From: Stylophora pistillata
Taxonomy: Eukaryota
DNA length: 64,000 bases
NCBI RefSeq assembly: GCF_002571385.2
Contig: NW_019217810.1
Location: 383,609-447,608, forward strand
Direction of reading: 5' to 3'
The notes beneath the pieces were generated by a model that saw only the letters and a program-made list of their open reading frames with translations, was not told where the DNA came from and searched no databases. Within the stretch, counting starts at the first letter, position 1. Every line of letters starts with the position of its first letter. Shown here in pieces: positions 9,593 to 20,151 of the stretch. Position numbers and translations under genes: made by a program.

Positions 9593-11096
9593 GACTTATG
9601 TGATCTGTAACAATGTTCAAGTTTTCGACTTTGGTGATAGAATTGTGTTTCGTCGTTATATGTTGTGCTTATGGAGACAGGAACCTTACTGTTTCCGCAA
9701 GCAGACAATCCAACTAGGCTAGGCCGGTACTACAGCAATATTCATTTACTTCTCCGACGATATCCAGGTAGATTGTTTTACAAGTCGTGGAGGAGTAGAA
9801 AACGGGTCAGCGAAACAGGTCAACAAAGTACGGGCGTTCTATTTGAGAATATGTGTGAATCTACCCTATCCGAGCGAAAAACAGGCCTTTTCACGTGGCT
9901 AAATATCTAACTTAGTGTCAATCAAAATAGTCAAGGAAAATCAAGTTTAAAGTTCATGGCATTAACAAAACATTTACGATTTAACGCAGATAAAGTTTTC
10001 ATTGATAAAAAAAAGGTTAATGCTGGACGAAATAAACTATTTGCACTACTTACTCGGCCGACCGTTACTTCAAAGAAAAAAACAGCCCACAGAAAGAGGG
10101 AAACTTGTGGATGCGTAATAATGGAGTAATTGGAATAATGTCAGTGCAAAGCAATGCTGTCTGGTTTATCAAACGTTGATGCTATTCCTTATTATAAACG
10201 TACACGCCTCGTAGCTACCAAAATACGATAGTTCATTAGCATGTGGTTACCAGGTTTGTAAGATGAGCAGAAGTCATCCTCACCGTGAGAATGAGAAAAA
10301 AACTCCTTTCTTGCGTGTTGAAATTTTGCATTGTTAGTTTTGGTCTCGTTCCACTTTCTCGTTTGTCTATGCTCGTACTTATACCACAACTAACAACCTT
10401 AAGAAAAATAGGATAGCGTAATAAAGTCGCAATGCCACAAGAAGCATTTAGCTTTTACATGTATTACTTTTATTGACATAAAATTTTTCGACCACGAAAG
10501 AGAGAGAGCATCCTTTGTAAGTTATATATTATTTACACTTTGATCGATATAATAGAAACCCATTTGAAAAAAGTAAGACCTCCTTCCCCTTTAGTAGATC
10601 CATGTTGGACGCATATTGGTATGCTTTTGAAAGTAAGGCTCTCTAAAATAAGAGACTAAAGCCAAGAATCGAAAAACCTTGTAACATTACGAATAAAACA
10701 AAGGGAAATTATCATTTTTCATGGTAAATCATTAATATAAACGACGAACAATGGTTCGGTTTTGTAATGCTGGAATTTACTTGTTTTCCTTTCTCAGTTT
10801 TCGTTTTCTTTTTCATTATTTGGAGTCTGTCTGTAAACCAAATTTTAACGCTTGGCTCTGGTAAACTTATGAATACTGCCACAGGAACTGAGACATATTG
10901 ATTACAAAATACGTTTGAATCCCAGTTGGATTTTTGGTAACGTTCATGGAAACACTTGGCACAGCTTCTGAGTTGTGGCAATTTTATGCGATTGACATCC
11001 AAAGGGAATCTGTTCTTTAAAAAATAATATTTTGCAGGTACATCTGTGAAATTGAAAAACCCTCGCTTCCGATGTATTTTGTCACTTGCGAGTCAA

Positions 11097-13605
11097 TCAT
11101 CCTCTATAGGCATCTATGTTCTTCCAGTTTCCATACGATGTTCTGTACGCCTGATATCTCTGATAAGGGTTCGGGTATTGAGATCTCGCTTGAGCGTATT
11201 GCTTGTACTCTGTGTAATAGTTATTTGACTGAGAGGCTGGATAATAATTGCGATATCTGTAGGTGGCGGGTGGCATACGTGTTTGCGAGTAGGAGAGTGG
11301 CCTTATACTGTTCAATGCGGCGTTGCGGCCGATACAACACTTGACTGAACAGACTGGAGCACAGGTACTCGGGCATGATCCAGGGCAGGCAGTGGCATGG
11401 GCAGGGGGAAGTGCTGGAGCAGGCATGGGATAGTATACAGGAGAGGGGGCTGGGGGAGGAGGTGGACTGCAGCAAGTCTGAGAACATGCAGGGAAGCACC
11501 TTGCTGGGCATGTTCCGGGGCATGTTGGAGGAAGCTGTGGAGGGGGAGGCGGAGAAGGAGGAGGAGGCGGTGGGGGAGTGCAGCAGCTGATGTCACATCT
11601 GGGAAAGCACTTGTATGGTTTGTGGCATGGAAGAGAACACACCTGATCATAAAGATAAAGAGAGTTCAATATGTCAGAATGCTATGCTATCAACTCATGG
11701 AATCGCATATAAAAGTGTTTAGTTTCTAGGTTGTGTGATGATCTGAAGCAAGAGGGTTCTGGAGATCAGGATCGATTACCATAAATTGGGTAACCAATTG
11801 AGTATTCAAAGGATTTCCCAACCAGCTGCGGCCTTTGACCTGAAATCACAACCATTGCGAGAATAAAGAAATAGCAACCACATCCCCCATTAAGGTAACA
11901 ATGCCTTTCTACGATTCTTATAATTGGGGCTGATCGAATACGCAGCTATCAAAATGCGGTAATTTCTGTTCGGACATTGCAGAATTTGATAAATATGTGA
12001 TTCATCAACTTACCGGCACAATCTTTGGGTGCTGTATACATCGGTAGACAACTCTGGCATACTTATAGACTTCAGGGCACATTATAGAGTTTTTCTTTCC
12101 CAGGAAAGAACTAGTGGCTGCCACTGAACATTTGCTTTCTCCTTGACACAAGTCAAATAACTTCTCATTGATTCTATGTTCGTCCTTCACACAGTGTCCT
12201 TTAGAAGGGAGCACTTTATGTTGACATGTATTGTTGTCATCTCTGCCGTAAAATGTACTGTATAGGGCGATGCGATCATACCTATGGAACAGGTACAAGG
12301 GGTTCATTGGGAAATTTAATCACACCGACAATCTTACCTTAGCTGAAGTTCATGACAAGTTGTAGTGTCTTTACAAAGCTTTTTTTTACAATAGACGCAT
12401 AAAAAGTAAAAGGCACAGCTTTGTAGGAAAATTGAGAAAATTGGCTGAAAAGAAGACATGTTGTAATGCTTGTTTGTTTGCAAGTAGTAAGGGAAGAATG
12501 AACTCACTGCGCTTTGATTACACGATTATAACCAGCGATTATATACGCGAAACAAACAACTAATATCATGGATGAATAAGGAAGACAGAGTTTATAGTCT
12601 TTAACCTAAGGTTTACTGAATTACTCATCTTTAGTTATTCAATGGAGAATGACATTTCGTACTTGTTTGGGCATCTAATCTTCAGTTTATGTCCCTCGCA
12701 GGCTACTGCCACCTTCTGTTTTCTCTTCATGAACAAAGGCATCGGAGGAGGCTTGGGTTGGCAGCATGATGAGGAGCACTGGGGGTAGCACTCCTTTGGG
12801 CAGTCCGCTGGACAGGGAGGTGGAGGCGGTGGTGGCGGTGGAGGTGGGGGAGGGGGAGATGGGGAAGGAGCGGGAATGGGAACAGCAGCAGGAGAGGGGG
12901 TGGCAGCCGGCGCAAATGCTGCCGGAGAAGGAGGAGCAGCGGGATATTGAAAATATGGGGCAGTGGAGGGTGCTGACTGAGCAGGCTGTTGATAGTAATA
13001 CCGCAGCTGTTGCTGCCGCTGTTGTTGCTCTTCTTGTAGCAGCTGCTGTTGTTGATATATGGACGATCGTTGAGCTGTGTAGCAACACATTGGGTTACAC
13101 CTAGGGTAACACCGAGGAGAGCAATTTCCCGGACAGCTTCCTGAAGAGAAGAAACTTACCCTGTATCAGTAAAAGCAGTAATTCCAGTTTTTGGATTGTA
13201 TTTACTTTTAAGCGAGTCAAGATGGTGTGACCTTTACGGACCAGAAAAACTAACGCAAAAATCAACGTTTGTACTGCTGGATTGTATAATTCAAAGCCTA
13301 CTCAATTGATTACTGCCTGGAAGCCGTCAGGATCTAAATAGTTGTCTAAAATCTCGTCAATCAAACTTGTAATTCCTTGGTCATTTATAGTCAGTCAGTC
13401 AGTAAGTCAGATAGTCGATCGGTCAATCAATCAATCAGTTAGTCAGTCAGTCGCTCAGTTAGTAATTCTGTCAGTGACTCAGTTAGTTAGCGTGTTAATC
13501 ACTCGCTCGCTTTTTTCGCTCTCTTCTTCATTTGAACCTACCATATCAAGAGCCTTCCGCCGTATAAATGAACAAGGCAACCGCTATGAAACTAGCCAGC
13601 CACAT
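11097..13605 (-). CDS. Gene A: secreted SUEL (rhamnose/galactose-binding) lectin with five minicollagen-type CRDs and poly-Pro/poly-Gln linkers, ~451 codons; in-frame TGA at codon 20
   Basis: Exons 13605-13542, 13140-12663, 12281-12014 and 11642-11097, phases consistent. Signal MWLASFIAVALFIYTAEG. CRDs: CPGNCSPRCYPRCNPMCC, CPADCPKECYPQCSSSCC, CSLPCHKPYKCFPRCDISCC, CPGTCPARCFPACSQTCC, CPGSCPSTCAPVCSVKCC. SUEL: ACEG..LKIRC..YGR..C..LCQG..C.V.A..F...CP.VYKY...YRC. Confidence 0.85.
13388..13510. repeat. Degenerate (TCAG/TCAA)n tetranucleotide repeat in gene A intron 1
   Basis: agtcagtcagtc...tcaatcaatcaatcagttagtcagtcag. Confidence 0.7.
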
Positions 13606-16339
13606 GTTGAATTAGGACTGCAAATTTCTGGAGAAAAACGTGGAAACATTGAGATAAGATGTAAACGTAACAAAACCAGTTAAAATGATGTTAAACAAGA
13701 AAGGTCCCTTTAAATTTGAATATTTCCCTTCCTCAGGTTTCATCCTCTTTTCCCATCATTGACCTGTCTTAAACTGGCCCTGTGTCGGTGATTCTTTTCG
13801 CTTTGTTTATTTCAGTGGTCTTGAAAATGATAGGAAACGAAGCAGTGTGTAGCGCATCAGTGCGAGGAGCATTAAACTGCGGAAAATATAATTTTGTGGC
13901 TAAGTTAAGCAAAAAATTGGCCCGTAAATCTTTCAAATGGTAGAATATTTACTGATCATTAGAAGTACAGTTCCACACTAGACCACAAGAAGCGATTCTG
14001 ACAGGCTAAAATGAGTAAATTGAATCGAATTTAGCAGAGGTTATTCGCAATGTTGTTCATCTCGTCCTCTGGTTATCGGGTCGAAAATGCGATTTAGGGT
14101 TTTGGTACCGGAGCTGACAGCAAACTTGGTGCACATAACACTAGGTTTGGAAATCAAATTCGGCCCCCTCAACGGTAAGAGGCAAATGATCAGAATGATC
14201 TCACCTCTGTGCCGTCACTTAAAGTTAAGACAATTAACGTTGAAAGCACTCTTACGGAAAGACTATAACCTGGGACAGAATATTGCAGTCTCAAGGGCAA
14301 ACTGTCCTCGATTTTGTGTCTGATTGTCCAGACTGCAAAACTTTGAAATACAGTCAACTTTTTACATTTTAAACGTGGTTAAAAGTTGCAGCCGATGATC
14401 CAGAATTATCTTTGTGTCATTCAGGAACCCTCGACTGTGTGACACTTTAACAGTTCAACCATGAACAAGAGGATACCTTTCCCCTCTAATCGCGTGAATT
14501 AGCAGCCTTTTGAGGCGATCTTTGTGTTCAATTGCCGCAACGTTGTTTGTCTCAAAGGATCGCCTGGTACCTGTTTGAATTTCACACCGTAACGTGTAGA
14601 AAAGCCTGATTCTAAACAGTCTAAACTATCGTATCTGTAATAAACTCAAGGATAGAACGGCTTTTCTTAATTAATTTATTTTTCATTCGCGACTATATGT
14701 TTAATTTCTTGTCTTGTTCGTGGGTGTATGCGAACTTTCGAATTAGTTAAACAATTGTCAATGATCTAATAAAGTAGCAAAATGAATCATGTCGTGATTT
14801 ACACAAACAATTTACGGATTAAGACGTTAAGATAAATCAAACAAGAAAATTGGATCCCTTTTAAGACGAAATTCCTTTAAAAATACTCACTAAAAGGTTG
14901 CAAACAAAACTACAGGAATTCACTAACCTCTAGGTTATTTGGCTTGCGGACTTTTCAGGTGCAAGAATAGGTCTAAAAGTAGAACGAAAATGATAAAACT
15001 CACGGGACGTCAAGAATGACAAAATATGTCGTTACCAAATTTACACTCAAATGATTTTCCCATCAAAACGATTTGCAGGAAGAGGTGTCCAGGTGTCCCG
15101 CTTTGATTTGAAAACCCGCTACTTAAGATAAAGTATAATCAAATACTTTGGTAAATTACCATTCATTAGCTTTGTCCTCCATTTTTTTGACCGACATGGT
15201 GGCGGGGTCGACAAGTTCGTAATGGTAGTGGAATTCTAAAAATAATATTATGATGTCATTGGACTACCCGTCGCTATGACAATATTTTGCTGGTTAGCTG
15301 AATAAGGAAAATGCGCTCAATGATTGCTCAACAAGACCATTTAAAAGGTCAGAAATCTCTTTTCTCAGCTTACTCGACTAAAGTCCAATACTTTGAATGA
15401 TTTTTGCGTCTCGCCAAAGTGTTTTTCGCGAATTTGTTTTGTTCTTGTTGCATCAGTTAGGGTTCAAATGGAGCGTCTAACTGACAAAATTTTTTATCTG
15501 GATGTGGAGATTTTTATCTGCTCATTTGTTGCGGGCCATGTACTTACTTGAATCGAACTAAGGAGAGGACATAACCAGTAACGGTGTAATTAGGCATGTA
15601 AGGCAAAAAGAAAGATGTATAATGGACAAACTGATAAATAAAAATTACGAGATCAAATATGCCGCGATGATACCGCACTGTTCTCTCTTGTCAGCGAAAC
15701 AAGCCGAAAGTTTAAATCACCTGTTAGAAAGGATTGGAAACCTGTCTCCACAGGCATGCCCCTTACCTTGTGGAGACAAGAAAGAGAACGTTCCTGGAAA
15801 AATAAAGAGACACTGTCACTCTTCTCAAAATTTCTCATTGCGTGAACTCCCCGCAAAGGATCAAATGCTATGAGCTCAGTGTGTCATGCCGTTTTGTGAA
15901 AGGAAATCTCTCAGCTGCCAAGCAAGTGAATCTACTACGAGCAGTCGATCTTCAGCCCGCGAGTATAGGAAAATTTAGACGCATTGTTCACAATTTAGCG
16001 TTCGTCTGTCGTTTGCAACAGTTGGTGGGAGACGTGCTAACATCACCAAAACTGAGAGCCTATAAGCCTTAGCACCAAGTCATATTTGAGTAGAGCATTT
16101 TTATTCTATTTTAGCATCCGAAATACCCATATTTGAATTAAAAGGCACGCCATTTGCATTACCGTTTTAATAGAGTCTCAACTTTGGGAATAACATACAA
16201 AAAAAGTAGGGACATATATAGGTTTTGGCCAACATTTGGTTATGAAAGTTATCAAGTCGACAGTTATCAGAGGTTGTTGCCTTGAGTTGTGTGTTAAAGC
16301 CCCAGGCACTCATCGAATGAGTCAGACCATCGGTCTTAA

Positions 16340-17704: not shown

Positions 17705-20151
17705 TTATCTTATCTCTGCATCATAAATAACATCGCGTTGCTCTTCAACCTCATTCCAATCACCTGAAGCACTCTGCTCACCACTGGGCTCTTCTCCAGA
17801 CTCCTCAGGTCGCATAGGAGTCTCTGATTTTTTGTACGTCTCATTGACTTCCGCTGATTGTGACGACGCCGCGTTGGCCGGGAACGTCTCAGTGATTACG
17901 TCAGTTGTAGCCTGTGGTTGAGTGAATTCCTCAGTTACGTCACTTCCGACTGCTGGGGTATTGTGTGTATCAACTGGAGTAACAGACGCTTGTGACGTAG
18001 CAGTAGTGATCGGTTGACTGTTTTCGTGCTCTTGAACAGTAATTTCCGGTACGGAAGATGAAGAAGACGAAGATGACGTTTCCGTGGAGACAGAGGTAGA
18101 CGAAGTTACGCCTCCCATGCCACCAGTTATCACCTCGTTGACTGATTGGCTATTTTCTGAGGCGCTGTCTACATTTGGATAATATGTTCGTGGTGTGCAC
18201 CTATAAGGAAGACATTACATCTGTCATAATATTGTAGACTGTAAACCTCCTTGTATCCTTTATTTTGCTTGTGAGATTGTTCCAAAACTCTCTGTAAGAA
18301 GTCTGCACATTTCTATTCTTTCAGGCGAATCAAGAAGAAAATATTTTAAGTGTATAGACTCTCTCCTTCCATGTAAAAGCTGAAGGTCTCACTTCCAACC
18401 ATATAGTTCCGTAAAGACACATAACTGTTTTAGGTTTTATCATATAGCTGTCAGAAGAAAAGTACAGCAACACTGCAGATTTGAGGAGCAGGTACTAGTT
18501 TGTATTTAGGACAAAAAAAAAAAAAAACAAAAACAAGAAAAAAGAAAACAAGAAGAAAAAAATTTAACCTGTATTTTATTTCCAAGTATTTGTACACATC
18601 AGGGCAGATTGTAGTTCCAGCCTTGGCCAGGAAATTGTTATTAGCTGCCACTTCACAAGCATGTTCCCCTTCGCAGAGACCAACAATCTGAGCCTTAACC
18701 TGCGTCTCTTGTTCCTGGCATACTGCACTGGAAGGGATACTTGGGTGAACGCAGATTTTTGGGTCCTTACGACCGTACATTGTCTCCACAATTGCTAAAT
18801 CATCGAAAGGGCTTGGGCATTGAACGTACGCTTTTTGTCCTTCGCACACAACTTCGTTTTTCTGGAAGGAAGGGGGATGAAATTACAGTTAAAGGTCGAA
18901 CTTATCAAAAAGTCTTTATCTTTCTTACTCAATGCACCGTGCCAACATTAAATTGAACACTCGAGAAGCTTCGCAGCGATGCGCCTATCCCTTGTCAACA
19001 GTCGCCGGTTAAAACCTCAGGGTTAGAAGAAACTCATACTGAATAAAATTGCTAGAGAGGGAGTTGTACCAAATGATCCTTGAGTGTTGCAAGGTCTGTT
19101 TTTAAAGAGAAGGACTAGATACATAGTCTGGAAGAAGTCATTTATGGCAAGACTGGATGCATTGATCAAAAAGCAGAGCACAAATGACTTCTCTGGAAAT
19201 AAGTGCAATTTGACACCATAAAAATTAATTTTTGCAAAACAGAAGACTTTTTAAAGCAGAATAAATATTTCTTACCACTTTCATAGCGCCTGGTGGCTCA
19301 GCGCTCTTCAGCGAGCCAGGATTTGGAGCTCCGTAGACAACTGGGAGAGGATAAAAAAGCAACAACTAGAACGTTGAGAAGTTGTGTTCGAGACAACCTT
19401 AAAGATGTACCAATAGACAGAAGATTCCTTTTTCTCGTCTTATTTCCTTTAGGATAATAAATGAAGTCTCTTTGATCAAAACTTTCAGTGGCTCACAGCT
19501 GAAGAGAACATCCTGTTACTGCAGACTTTAAACAGACCCTTGACTGTCAACACCGTCCCACCCCACATTCCATTACCTGGGATGCTAGTCCTTCACAGCG
19601 GAGTCCATCCCTATGGCGCTAGGTTTTTCACAACATTTTAACTTGTTTCATTTGGTCCACTCGGGCGATTTAAGTTTTAAACAGAAGGTCACGTATCGAG
19701 TATGGCTGCTACTCATGCAGATCATTCGATCCGAATTCGAAGTGAAGATAGCAAACCGTTAACCCAGCGAATTTCCCTAATAAAATTAATTTCTGTATGT
19801 GATTCGTTGTCGCTGACTTATTACCCGGTATACTTATTTGGCTTTTCAAGCTCGACGGGACCCTTCGTGTTGTCCACCTGCAGTTAGCAACATTCCCAGC
19901 CAAGTAGAAGTTTGTCAACCGTAAAAAGACAAGACGATGTTCAAACATATCCTACTGAATTACTGAAAAAGAATCAAAACTGGTTTATCACTCGGTGATA
20001 AATATTTGTTTGTAACTCTTCCGAAAATAGCGGGCCATTAAATCGCTTTGTTTACCGAATGGTAATGTTACTTGACGAAAATATTTGCGGTTACTCATTT
20101 CCTACCATACAAACAGCAAATCCACAGTGTTAACCACCAACTGCTTTCCAT
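17705..20151 (-). CDS. Gene B: secreted SUEL lectin with an acidic Ser/Thr-rich (mucin/proteoglycan-like) C-terminal stalk, 299 aa
   Basis: Exons 20151-20106, 19340-19276, 18861-18569 and 18200-17705 (900 nt, phases consistent). Signal MESSWWLTLWICCLYVVYG; SUEL VCEGQKAYVQC..MYGRKDPKIC..LCEGEHACEVAA..ICPDVYKYLEIKYRC; S/T/E-rich tail ending EESGEEPSGEQSASGDW...EIR. Confidence 0.88.

Follow-up and report, generated by a model that had tools for sequence, protein, structure and literature searches.

A stretch of 64,000 nucleotides of the Stylophora pistillata genome (contig NW_019217810.1, positions 383,609 to 447,608; hereafter the window, with a G+C content of 39%) carries on its minus strand a gene for a predicted secreted protein in which one SUEL (D-galactoside/L-rhamnose-binding) lectin domain is combined with five minicollagen-type cysteine-rich domains (CRDs). 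In the numbering of the window, which is used throughout, the coding span runs from the A of the ATG (13605) to the last base of the stop codon (11097) through four coding exons, giving a coding sequence of 1356 bases (451 codons and the stop) with introns that are all of the GT..AG type and have compatible phases. The original prediction, made from the letters of the window alone, had placed a single SUEL domain, five CRDs, polyproline and polyglutamine tracts and a tyrosine-rich tail in the span 11097-13605. All of these modules are present on the minus strand, one of the CRDs (CRD3) with variant spacing, and the span is exactly the coding one; the gene itself is larger, because its transcript includes two more 5' exons and a 3' untranslated region (UTR).

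The gene is real and expressed. The stretch is present in 20 of the 24 listed sequencing runs, nine recorded as RNA, with holders that span nine studies, and the RNA runs contain about 0.6 of its words, which is the share made up by exons and UTRs; runs X15-X17 contain 0.94-0.95 of them. Contigs of four polyA RNA runs belonging to four studies (X2, X3, X6 and X9, with X2 and X3 apparently duplicate records of a single data set) were aligned to positions 10500-15500. In all four runs a single contig skips 11643-12013 and 12282-12662, splicing exons 4, 3 and 2 across introns 2 and 3 with joints recorded from 11640 to 12012 and from 12278 to 12660, and the CRD and SUEL exons are therefore parts of one transcript and not of separate genes, the case that would have refuted the original prediction.

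The most upstream 5' UTR exon seen (15160-15189, its 5' end open) is joined to the next one by the junction 14972 to 15160 in one of the four RNA runs (X2, with 30 letters on that side). The second 5' UTR exon (14928-14972) is connected to exon 1 by a junction from 13627 to 14928, of the GT..AG type on the minus strand, in three of the four (X2, X3 and X9). Exon 1 (13542-13627) comprises 22 bases of 5' UTR, the ATG (13603-13605), the signal peptide MWLASFIAVALFIYTAEGS, codon 20, a Tyr codon and the first base of a Gly codon, and its donor at 13541 is used in an RNA contig of X9. It is followed by intron 1 (13141-13541, 401 bases, holding a GTCA-type simple repeat) and by exon 2 (12663-13140), both splice joints of which are seen in RNA. 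The main part of the lectin domain is encoded by exon 3 (12014-12281), and the coding part of exon 4 (11097-11642, stop codon 11097-11099) begins in phase 0 exactly where this domain ends. The 3' UTR (10525-11096) is about 570-640 bases long, with contigs reaching 10525 and 10529 in X2 and X3 and beyond 10500 in X6 and X9, and an AATAAA at 10474. A longer N-terminus contributed by the upstream exons was considered and ruled out by the stop codon that lies in frame directly before the ATG at 13605; the upstream ATGs open only short reading frames, closed by stops. An idea that the transcript is a miR-2022 target, taken up from passages of PMC10548089 that contain no miRNA sequence, was dropped.

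Domains of the encoded protein

The exon pieces were analysed separately, and statements about the whole protein rest on near-identical or orthologous natural proteins, namely P0002, P0151, P0152 and P0005. Exon 2 encodes CRD1 (CPGNC...CC, 13082-13135), a Gln-rich stretch (12986-13060), an Ala/Pro-rich stretch (12857-12985), a run of 14 prolines (12815-12856) placed directly before CRD2 (12761-12814), and a basic linker (12704-12760), and it contributes the initial 13 residues of the SUEL domain (12665-12703). Exon 4 encodes CRD3 (11580-11639), two polyproline runs of seven and five residues between CRD3 and CRD4 (11556-11576 and 11538-11552), CRD4 (11469-11522), a further run of five prolines between CRD4 and CRD5 (11451-11465), CRD5 (11334-11387) and a basic tail rich in Tyr, Arg, Asn and Gln (11100-11333). 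The spacing of the cysteines is canonical in CRD1, CRD2, CRD4 and CRD5, and CRD3 has the variant spacing C-x3-C-x5-C.

The presence of five CRDs is far beyond chance. Six-frame translation of the whole window yielded eight matches to the pattern C-x3-C-x3(5)-C-x3-C-x3-CC, five of them in this gene and three at 29042-29293; the pattern was absent from each of 100 shuffles of the window, and when the residues of each Cys-rich exon piece were shuffled 20,000 times, its mean frequency was 0.0001-0.0002 per shuffle. In a comparison of exon 4 with the PDB only two matches were obtained at E<=10, both to CRD structures of NOWA and both with all six cysteines aligned; the weak E-values of 0.5 and 1 are explained by the length of a CRD, which is 18 residues. 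Runs of at least three G-x-y triplets occur in none of the three exon pieces, in agreement with the original prediction, and Gly-X-Y runs of at least five triplets were found in none of 10 CRD-bearing relatives.

The tail consists of 78 residues, including 15 Tyr, 9 Arg, 8 Asn and 7 Gln, with 11 Lys and Arg versus 2 Asp and Glu. A Gly at the C-terminus, which is the usual amidation signal, follows Tyr, Arg or Gln (...YRG, ...YRYQG, ...YYQG) in six of the 10 family members inspected (the window gene, at 11100-11108, P0152, P0151, P0002, P0039 and P0029, and not P0005, P0158, P0159 or P0034).

Exon 3 alone is recognised by the Pfam profile PF02140 (E 3.1e-12, 47.1 bits versus a gathering cut-off of 31.4), and with the full profile, scores of 46.9-48.9 bits are obtained for the orthologues P0152, P0005 and P0158. 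Its relatives in the PDB are the rhamnose-binding lectins 5h4s (E 8e-11), 9vwi and 2zx0, and latrophilin 6ske; P0002 was aligned over the whole domain to solved rhamnose-binding-lectin domains of latrophilin in all six of its PDB matches. Eight conserved cysteines forming four disulfides are canonical for the SUEL/rhamnose-binding lectin domain. All eight are present in the S. pistillata protein, exon 2 contributing two at its end (ACEG..., ...RCPN) and exon 3 the other six, the last of them at 12038-12040, and they align, via P0002, to those of the latrophilin domains.

The sugar site of rhamnose-binding lectins is marked by the motifs YGR, (G)DPC and KYL. In alignments to solved lectins YGR is present, and Ala takes the place of Leu after KY. 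Ahead of the seventh cysteine, where the solved lectins have the short (G)DPC, the sequence contains a four-residue insertion and lacks Asp, and the same insertion is found in all nine aligned members of the family.

Codon 20 and the first intron

In the reference sequence codon 20, located between the signal peptide and CRD1, is an in-frame TGA (13546-13548). The RNA differs at 13547, where C is replaced by A (plus strand) and the codon becomes TTA, for Leu, in all three runs that cover the site (X2, X3 and X9, the first two of which are maybe one data set). Leu also occupies this site in the full-length orthologues P0151 and P0152, in which S-L-[L/F]-G-[T/S]-C-P-G leads into the first CRD. 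The TGA does not characterise the gene; it stems from a private null allele or from an assembly error in a single base, and the stop codon of the reference is not representative of the transcripts of the species.

The TGA stands four codons ahead of the first cysteine of CRD1, and a selenocysteine at this position would be in register with that domain (U-x3-C-x3-C...). Such a reading is contradicted by the TTA of the transcripts and by the Leu of the two full-length orthologues, and it deserves virtually no credence. Skipping of the TGA through a GC donor after GAAG was considered as well and ruled out, as the RNA uses the GT donor at 13541.

Intron 1 is spliced out in one of the four RNA runs (X9), in which a separate low-depth contig also spans it; the main contigs of X2, X3 and X6 still contain it. 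Retention may reflect regulated or inefficient splicing, or be an artefact of the path taken by the assembler; assembled contigs give no proportions of spliced and intron-1-retaining mRNA. A run of GTCA/AGTC-type tetranucleotide repeats occupies 13380-13480 inside this intron, and one RNA contig, of X6, breaks there.

The reference TGA, together with the retention of intron 1 in the main contig of three of the four runs, could also be read as a null allele or a decaying pseudogene in the sequenced individual. This is very unlikely, given that TTA is found in every RNA run covering the site, that the remaining frame is open and strongly conserved, and that both full-length orthologues have Leu at codon 20; a single-base assembly error or a heterozygous variant accounts for the TGA equally well.

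Relatives of the protein and neighbouring genes

A HMMER search with the lectin exon retrieved 206 proteins at E<=0.001. Among the best 150 of these, 10 contain at least one CRD motif and two have Gly-X-Y runs of the nematogalectin type. Word searches with P0002 and with profile A1 (the SUEL domain and the first CRD), in which low-complexity sequence filled the 8000 candidates considered, gave at least nine and at least 10 proteins, respectively, and missed members such as P0005 and P0039; a region search with P0039 gave four proteins, none of them named, and an Atlas look-up of P0005 gave generic SUEL lectins only, with scores below 0.8.

A close relative, P0002, is a Logan transcript assembly of 405 residues that begins inside CRD1 and is 99% identical in the lectin exon and 87% elsewhere. 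Two proteins have a domain order identical to that of the window gene, including the signal peptide and CRD1, namely P0151 (Logan, 442 residues) and P0152 from Acropora muricata (NCBI, 445 residues), annotated as "WAS/WASL-interacting protein family member 3-like". Their identity to the window gene is 81-84% in the lectin exon, 82-90% in the piece from CRD2 to the start of the lectin domain, 70-79% in the piece of exon 4 that encodes CRD3 to CRD5, and 49-58% where the sequence is of low complexity; the lectin domain and the CRDs are strongly conserved and the spacers weakly. The Nematostella orthologue P0005 (XP_048578831.1, "mediator of RNA polymerase II transcription subunit 15-like") is a close variant composed of a signal peptide, a Gln-rich part, a CRD, the SUEL domain (61% identical), a variant CRD, a CRD, polyproline, a CRD, a Gln-rich part and a CRD; it is without CRD1 and gains a C-terminal CRD. 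Both NCBI names derive from the polyproline and polyglutamine tracts and are misleading, and the proteins called "WASL-interacting" and "Mediator 15-like" are to be corrected to secreted lectins rich in Cys and Pro.

In a further group the signal peptide is followed by the SUEL domain and then by 3-8 CRDs, and the sequence often ends with ...YYQG (P0158/P0014, P0159/P0025, P0034, P0039, P0029, P0195, P0196 and P0050). In the coral genome the best match of a protein of this SUEL-first group is the window gene, at 41% identity. The gene is single-copy in the coral genome, and of 12 SUEL loci of the genome examined this is the only one with CRD motifs within 1.5 kb. By sequence comparison the protein is a member of a conserved and probably cnidarian family, as yet without a name, that is characterised by the fusion of a SUEL lectin to minicollagen-type CRDs.

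In an alignment of nine of the proteins, the columns common to all cover the SUEL domain and a CRD placed immediately behind it, linked by the junction ...Q-x-[PA]-[KRH]-[IL]..., and in five of the nine aligned relatives nothing Cys-rich precedes the lectin. The sequence comparison suggests that the N-terminal CRD modules are a hexacoral addition and that the conserved core is the lectin with the C-terminal CRD array. A quick tree of 148 SUEL domains, with few columns, many open forks and SH-aLRT (Shimodaira-Hasegawa-like approximate likelihood-ratio test) values as its only support, places all 13 CRD-bearing rows in one clade of 27 rows (SH-aLRT 97), together with one fragment and 13 SUEL-only rows similar in type to the protein of the neighbouring gene described below. 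The rows that bear Gly-X-Y lie outside this clade, P0116 and P0148 being in the same wider group of the tree. Judged from its sequence, the SUEL domain of the window gene is nearest to SUEL-only proteins and not to any minicollagen sequence.

The original prediction had seen in the lectin a substitute for the triple helix at the centre of a minicollagen. This idea finds no support, because five of the nine relatives have no Cys-rich part before the lectin, the Nematostella orthologue is without CRD1, and the SUEL domain is closest to that of SUEL-only proteins; what the relatives share is a SUEL domain with a CRD array directly behind it.

One such SUEL-only protein is encoded next to the studied gene. 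Its coding sequence (17705-18882, minus strand) contains the whole lectin domain in one exon (Pfam E 1.2e-11), followed by an acidic Ser/Thr-rich tail, and has no CRD. The gene is located on the same strand about 4 kb upstream of the ATG (about 5.1 kb to the start of its coding sequence), is the orthologue of a Montipora "uncharacterized protein" (P0022), and its lectin domain falls into the same clade as that of the studied gene. Further away a NOWA-like gene (22952-29320, plus strand) contains a CAP domain exon (22952-23296, Pfam E 1.7e-13) and, at 29042-29293, the other three CRDs of the window; those of its open reading frames that were tested gave no C-type lectin. Three genes built of stinging-capsule modules are thus present within 20 kb, and both neighbours lie within 16 kb of the studied gene.

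Comparison with capsule proteins and proposed role

Minicollagens consist of a signal peptide, a propeptide, a CRD, polyproline, a Gly-X-Y helix of about 12-16 repeats, polyproline and a CRD; the charged propeptide lies between the signal peptide and the first CRD, according to a passage of PMC4863159. The protein described here shares with them the signal peptide, the polyproline beside the CRDs and the CRD pattern C-x3-C-x3-C-x3-C-x3-CC (four canonical copies and one variant). It differs from them in its globular lectin domain and in having five CRDs where minicollagens have two, and it shows neither a Gly-X-Y repeat nor an evident propeptide. Since the repeat is missing, neither a triple helix nor trimerisation by one is expected, and the absence of both helix and propeptide excludes the protein from the minicollagens.

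Nematogalectins, in which a Gly-X-Y domain is N-terminal of the SUEL/Gal_lectin domain, resemble it in having a SUEL-type lectin domain in a cnidocyst-type protein. Unlike it, they are without CRDs, contain a collagen-like stretch and have SUEL domains outside the 27-row clade; the lack of Gly-X-Y and the different SUEL clade show that the protein is not a nematogalectin. NSP3, as described in part of the text of PMC6134521, has a signal peptide and one galactose-binding lectin domain and was reported there not to be found in anthozoans. It is likewise a collagen-less nematocyst protein of SUEL type, but is described in that text without CRDs, and the SUEL-only neighbour at 17705-18882 is nearer to this description.

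CPP-1 and Cnidoin of Hydra are non-collagen capsule-wall proteins with CRDs. Passages of the respective papers describe a rigid polyproline middle for CPP-1 (PMC6910907) and an elastic Gly/Gln-rich one for Cnidoin (PMC4321713), both proteins being incorporated together with minicollagens. The combination of CRDs with a non-collagen middle part is common to them and to the protein of the window, whereas neither of them has a lectin domain. As a separate observation, the minus strand of locus L004/L005 (G000:C53, about 638,300-639,200) contains an open frame with seven CRDs and proline-rich spacers, without lectin or collagen, which is similar to P0157, a hypothetical protein of Oculina patagonica that is CPP-like and has multiple CRDs.

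NOWA comprises a CAP/SCP domain, a C-type lectin domain, eight CRDs and a basic C-terminus. As in NOWA, the lectin domain is followed by a CRD array, here of three CRDs, and by a basic tail, and the proposed logic is the same, that of a multivalent lectin oligomerised via CRDs, as put forward in a passage of PMC10014300. In contrast to NOWA, the lectin is of the SUEL and not of the C-type fold, Pfam finds neither CAP nor C-type lectin in any exon piece, two of the five CRDs precede the lectin, the polyproline and polyglutamine spacers are long and the tail is rich in Tyr. Lacking both a CAP and a C-type lectin domain, the protein cannot be classed as NOWA; by analogy it most likely works in a way closest to NOWA, as a member of the wider class of CRD-bearing capsule proteins and not as a new kind.

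The original prediction knew of no name for this architecture, and this has held: the NCBI names of the orthologues are uninformative, and no combination of CRD and SUEL was described in the full texts searched, a set outside which lie the Hydra nematocyst proteome and the supplementary tables of PMC12549020 and PMC6161364, which may list it. In the parts of their texts considered, a paper on the Nematostella matrisome mentions four "minicollagen-like" proteins and a cnidocyte transcriptome paper mentions NVE3843, a Gal-lectin protein.

Taken together, the modules suggest that the product of the gene is probably a structural protein secreted into the cnidocyst and located in its wall or tubule. 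It would correspond to NOWA with a SUEL lectin, its CRDs welding it into the minicollagen network and its lectin holding capsule glycans. The signal peptide would send the protein to the growing post-Golgi capsule vesicle, where the five CRDs, of 18-20 residues each and spaced by stiff polyproline rods, would exchange disulfides with the CRDs of minicollagens, NOWA and similar proteins during hardening of the wall. Because CRDs exchange disulfides, a property known from published CRD chemistry and represented here by the motif, the protein would be a covalent, multivalent node of the network. The SUEL domain would bind a galactose- or rhamnose-type capsule glycan, the most plausible partners being the scaffold of non-sulfated chondroitin or glycosylated proteins of the wall, and would link the glycan scaffold with the protein network, in the way suggested for the C-type lectin of NOWA. 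More speculatively, the basic Tyr/Arg-rich tail and the Gln-rich stretch might make weak multivalent contacts with the acidic contents of the capsule; charge pairing with these contents, condensation driven by Tyr and Arg, and dityrosine or DOPA cross-links are speculations on the role of the tail.

Several published observations are consistent with this scheme. According to parts of the text of PMC4863159, CRDs polymerise by disulfide exchange that is promiscuous between N- and C-types, and heterologous proteins flanked by CRDs (GFP, mCherry) are carried into the polymers. A passage of PMC10014300 reports that NOWA, with its eight CRDs, forms droplet-like aggregates, and proposes a lectin-carbohydrate zipper that cross-links chondroitin-coated tube surfaces. 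In Cnidoin and CPP-1, the CRDs graft non-collagen middles into the capsule wall, as passages of PMC4321713 and PMC6910907 describe. The suggestion of the original prediction that CRDs could tie the lectin into a disulfide network agrees, by analogy, with the CRD-flanked heterologous polymers and with the zipper model. The conserved architecture, the single clade of the CRD-bearing rows and the two neighbouring genes with capsule modules also count in favour of the capsule reading.

Other observations weigh against such a role. The sugar-binding site may be altered, to judge from the Ala in place of the canonical Leu of KYL and the insertion at the (G)DPC stretch. A minicollagen-like propeptide is absent, as S-[stop/L]-Y-G and a Ser are all that separates the predicted signal peptide from the first cysteine of CRD1. 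The reference allele carries the stop at codon 20, and with intron 1 retained, as in the main contig of three of the four runs, the frame from the ATG closes after about 25 codons. Expression is documented by whole-colony polyA RNA, which does not show the cell type, and, as regards a pan-cnidarian range, the SUEL-first relatives come from unlabelled ENA, Logan and JGI assemblies.

In a capsule protein of this kind the lectin might also face outward: the CRDs would anchor it in the wall of the tubule or thread, and after discharge the SUEL domain would bind glycans of prey or substrate in an adhesive or toxin-like role. SUEL-type and rhamnose-binding lectins are listed among the proteins of nematocyst extracts in a passage of PMC11509761, and the architecture suits anchored display as well as a scaffold link. 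The models published for the known nematocyst lectins, NOWA and nematogalectin, are structural in the texts considered. The stretch that canonically forms the sugar site is altered in this protein, and an outward-facing lectin appears unlikely.

A protein outside the capsule is conceivable as well, namely a polymerising lectin that is secreted into mucus or extracellular matrix or acts in immunity, and in which CRD-like knots are simply re-used. SUEL lectins serve innate immunity in many animals, which counts in favour of such a function, and whole-colony RNA would fit it equally. However, the gene adjoins a NOWA-like gene, and the portions of the literature considered place minicollagen-type CRDs only in cnidocyst proteins (minicollagens, NOWA, Cnidoin, CPP and NvNCol-7), which makes a non-capsule function quite unlikely.

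If the protein is indeed a structural component of the cnidocyst, a wider scheme may be put forward tentatively. The SUEL-CRD family could be ancient and represent a second lectin-plus-CRD system of the capsule beside NOWA, in which a multivalent lectin with covalent anchorage zips or staples the minicollagen polymer to the scaffold of chondroitin and glycoprotein. The N-terminal CRD-polyQ-polyP-CRD part would be an acquisition of hexacorals. Droplet-like pre-assembly, ahead of cross-linking, would be driven by the Tyr/Arg-rich tail, whose final Gly may be an amidation signal, and the system might be restricted to one capsule type, e.g. spirocysts.

The way in which a scaffold of glycans and a protein network welded by disulfides are built into a 150-bar capsule is only partly understood, and to our knowledge NOWA is the only protein with both a lectin domain and CRDs that has been studied. 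A further conserved family that unites a lectin, of another fold, with CRDs would offer a direct handle on the step in which glycan and protein are coupled, and its Nematostella orthologue belongs to an organism for which knock-down and cell atlases exist.

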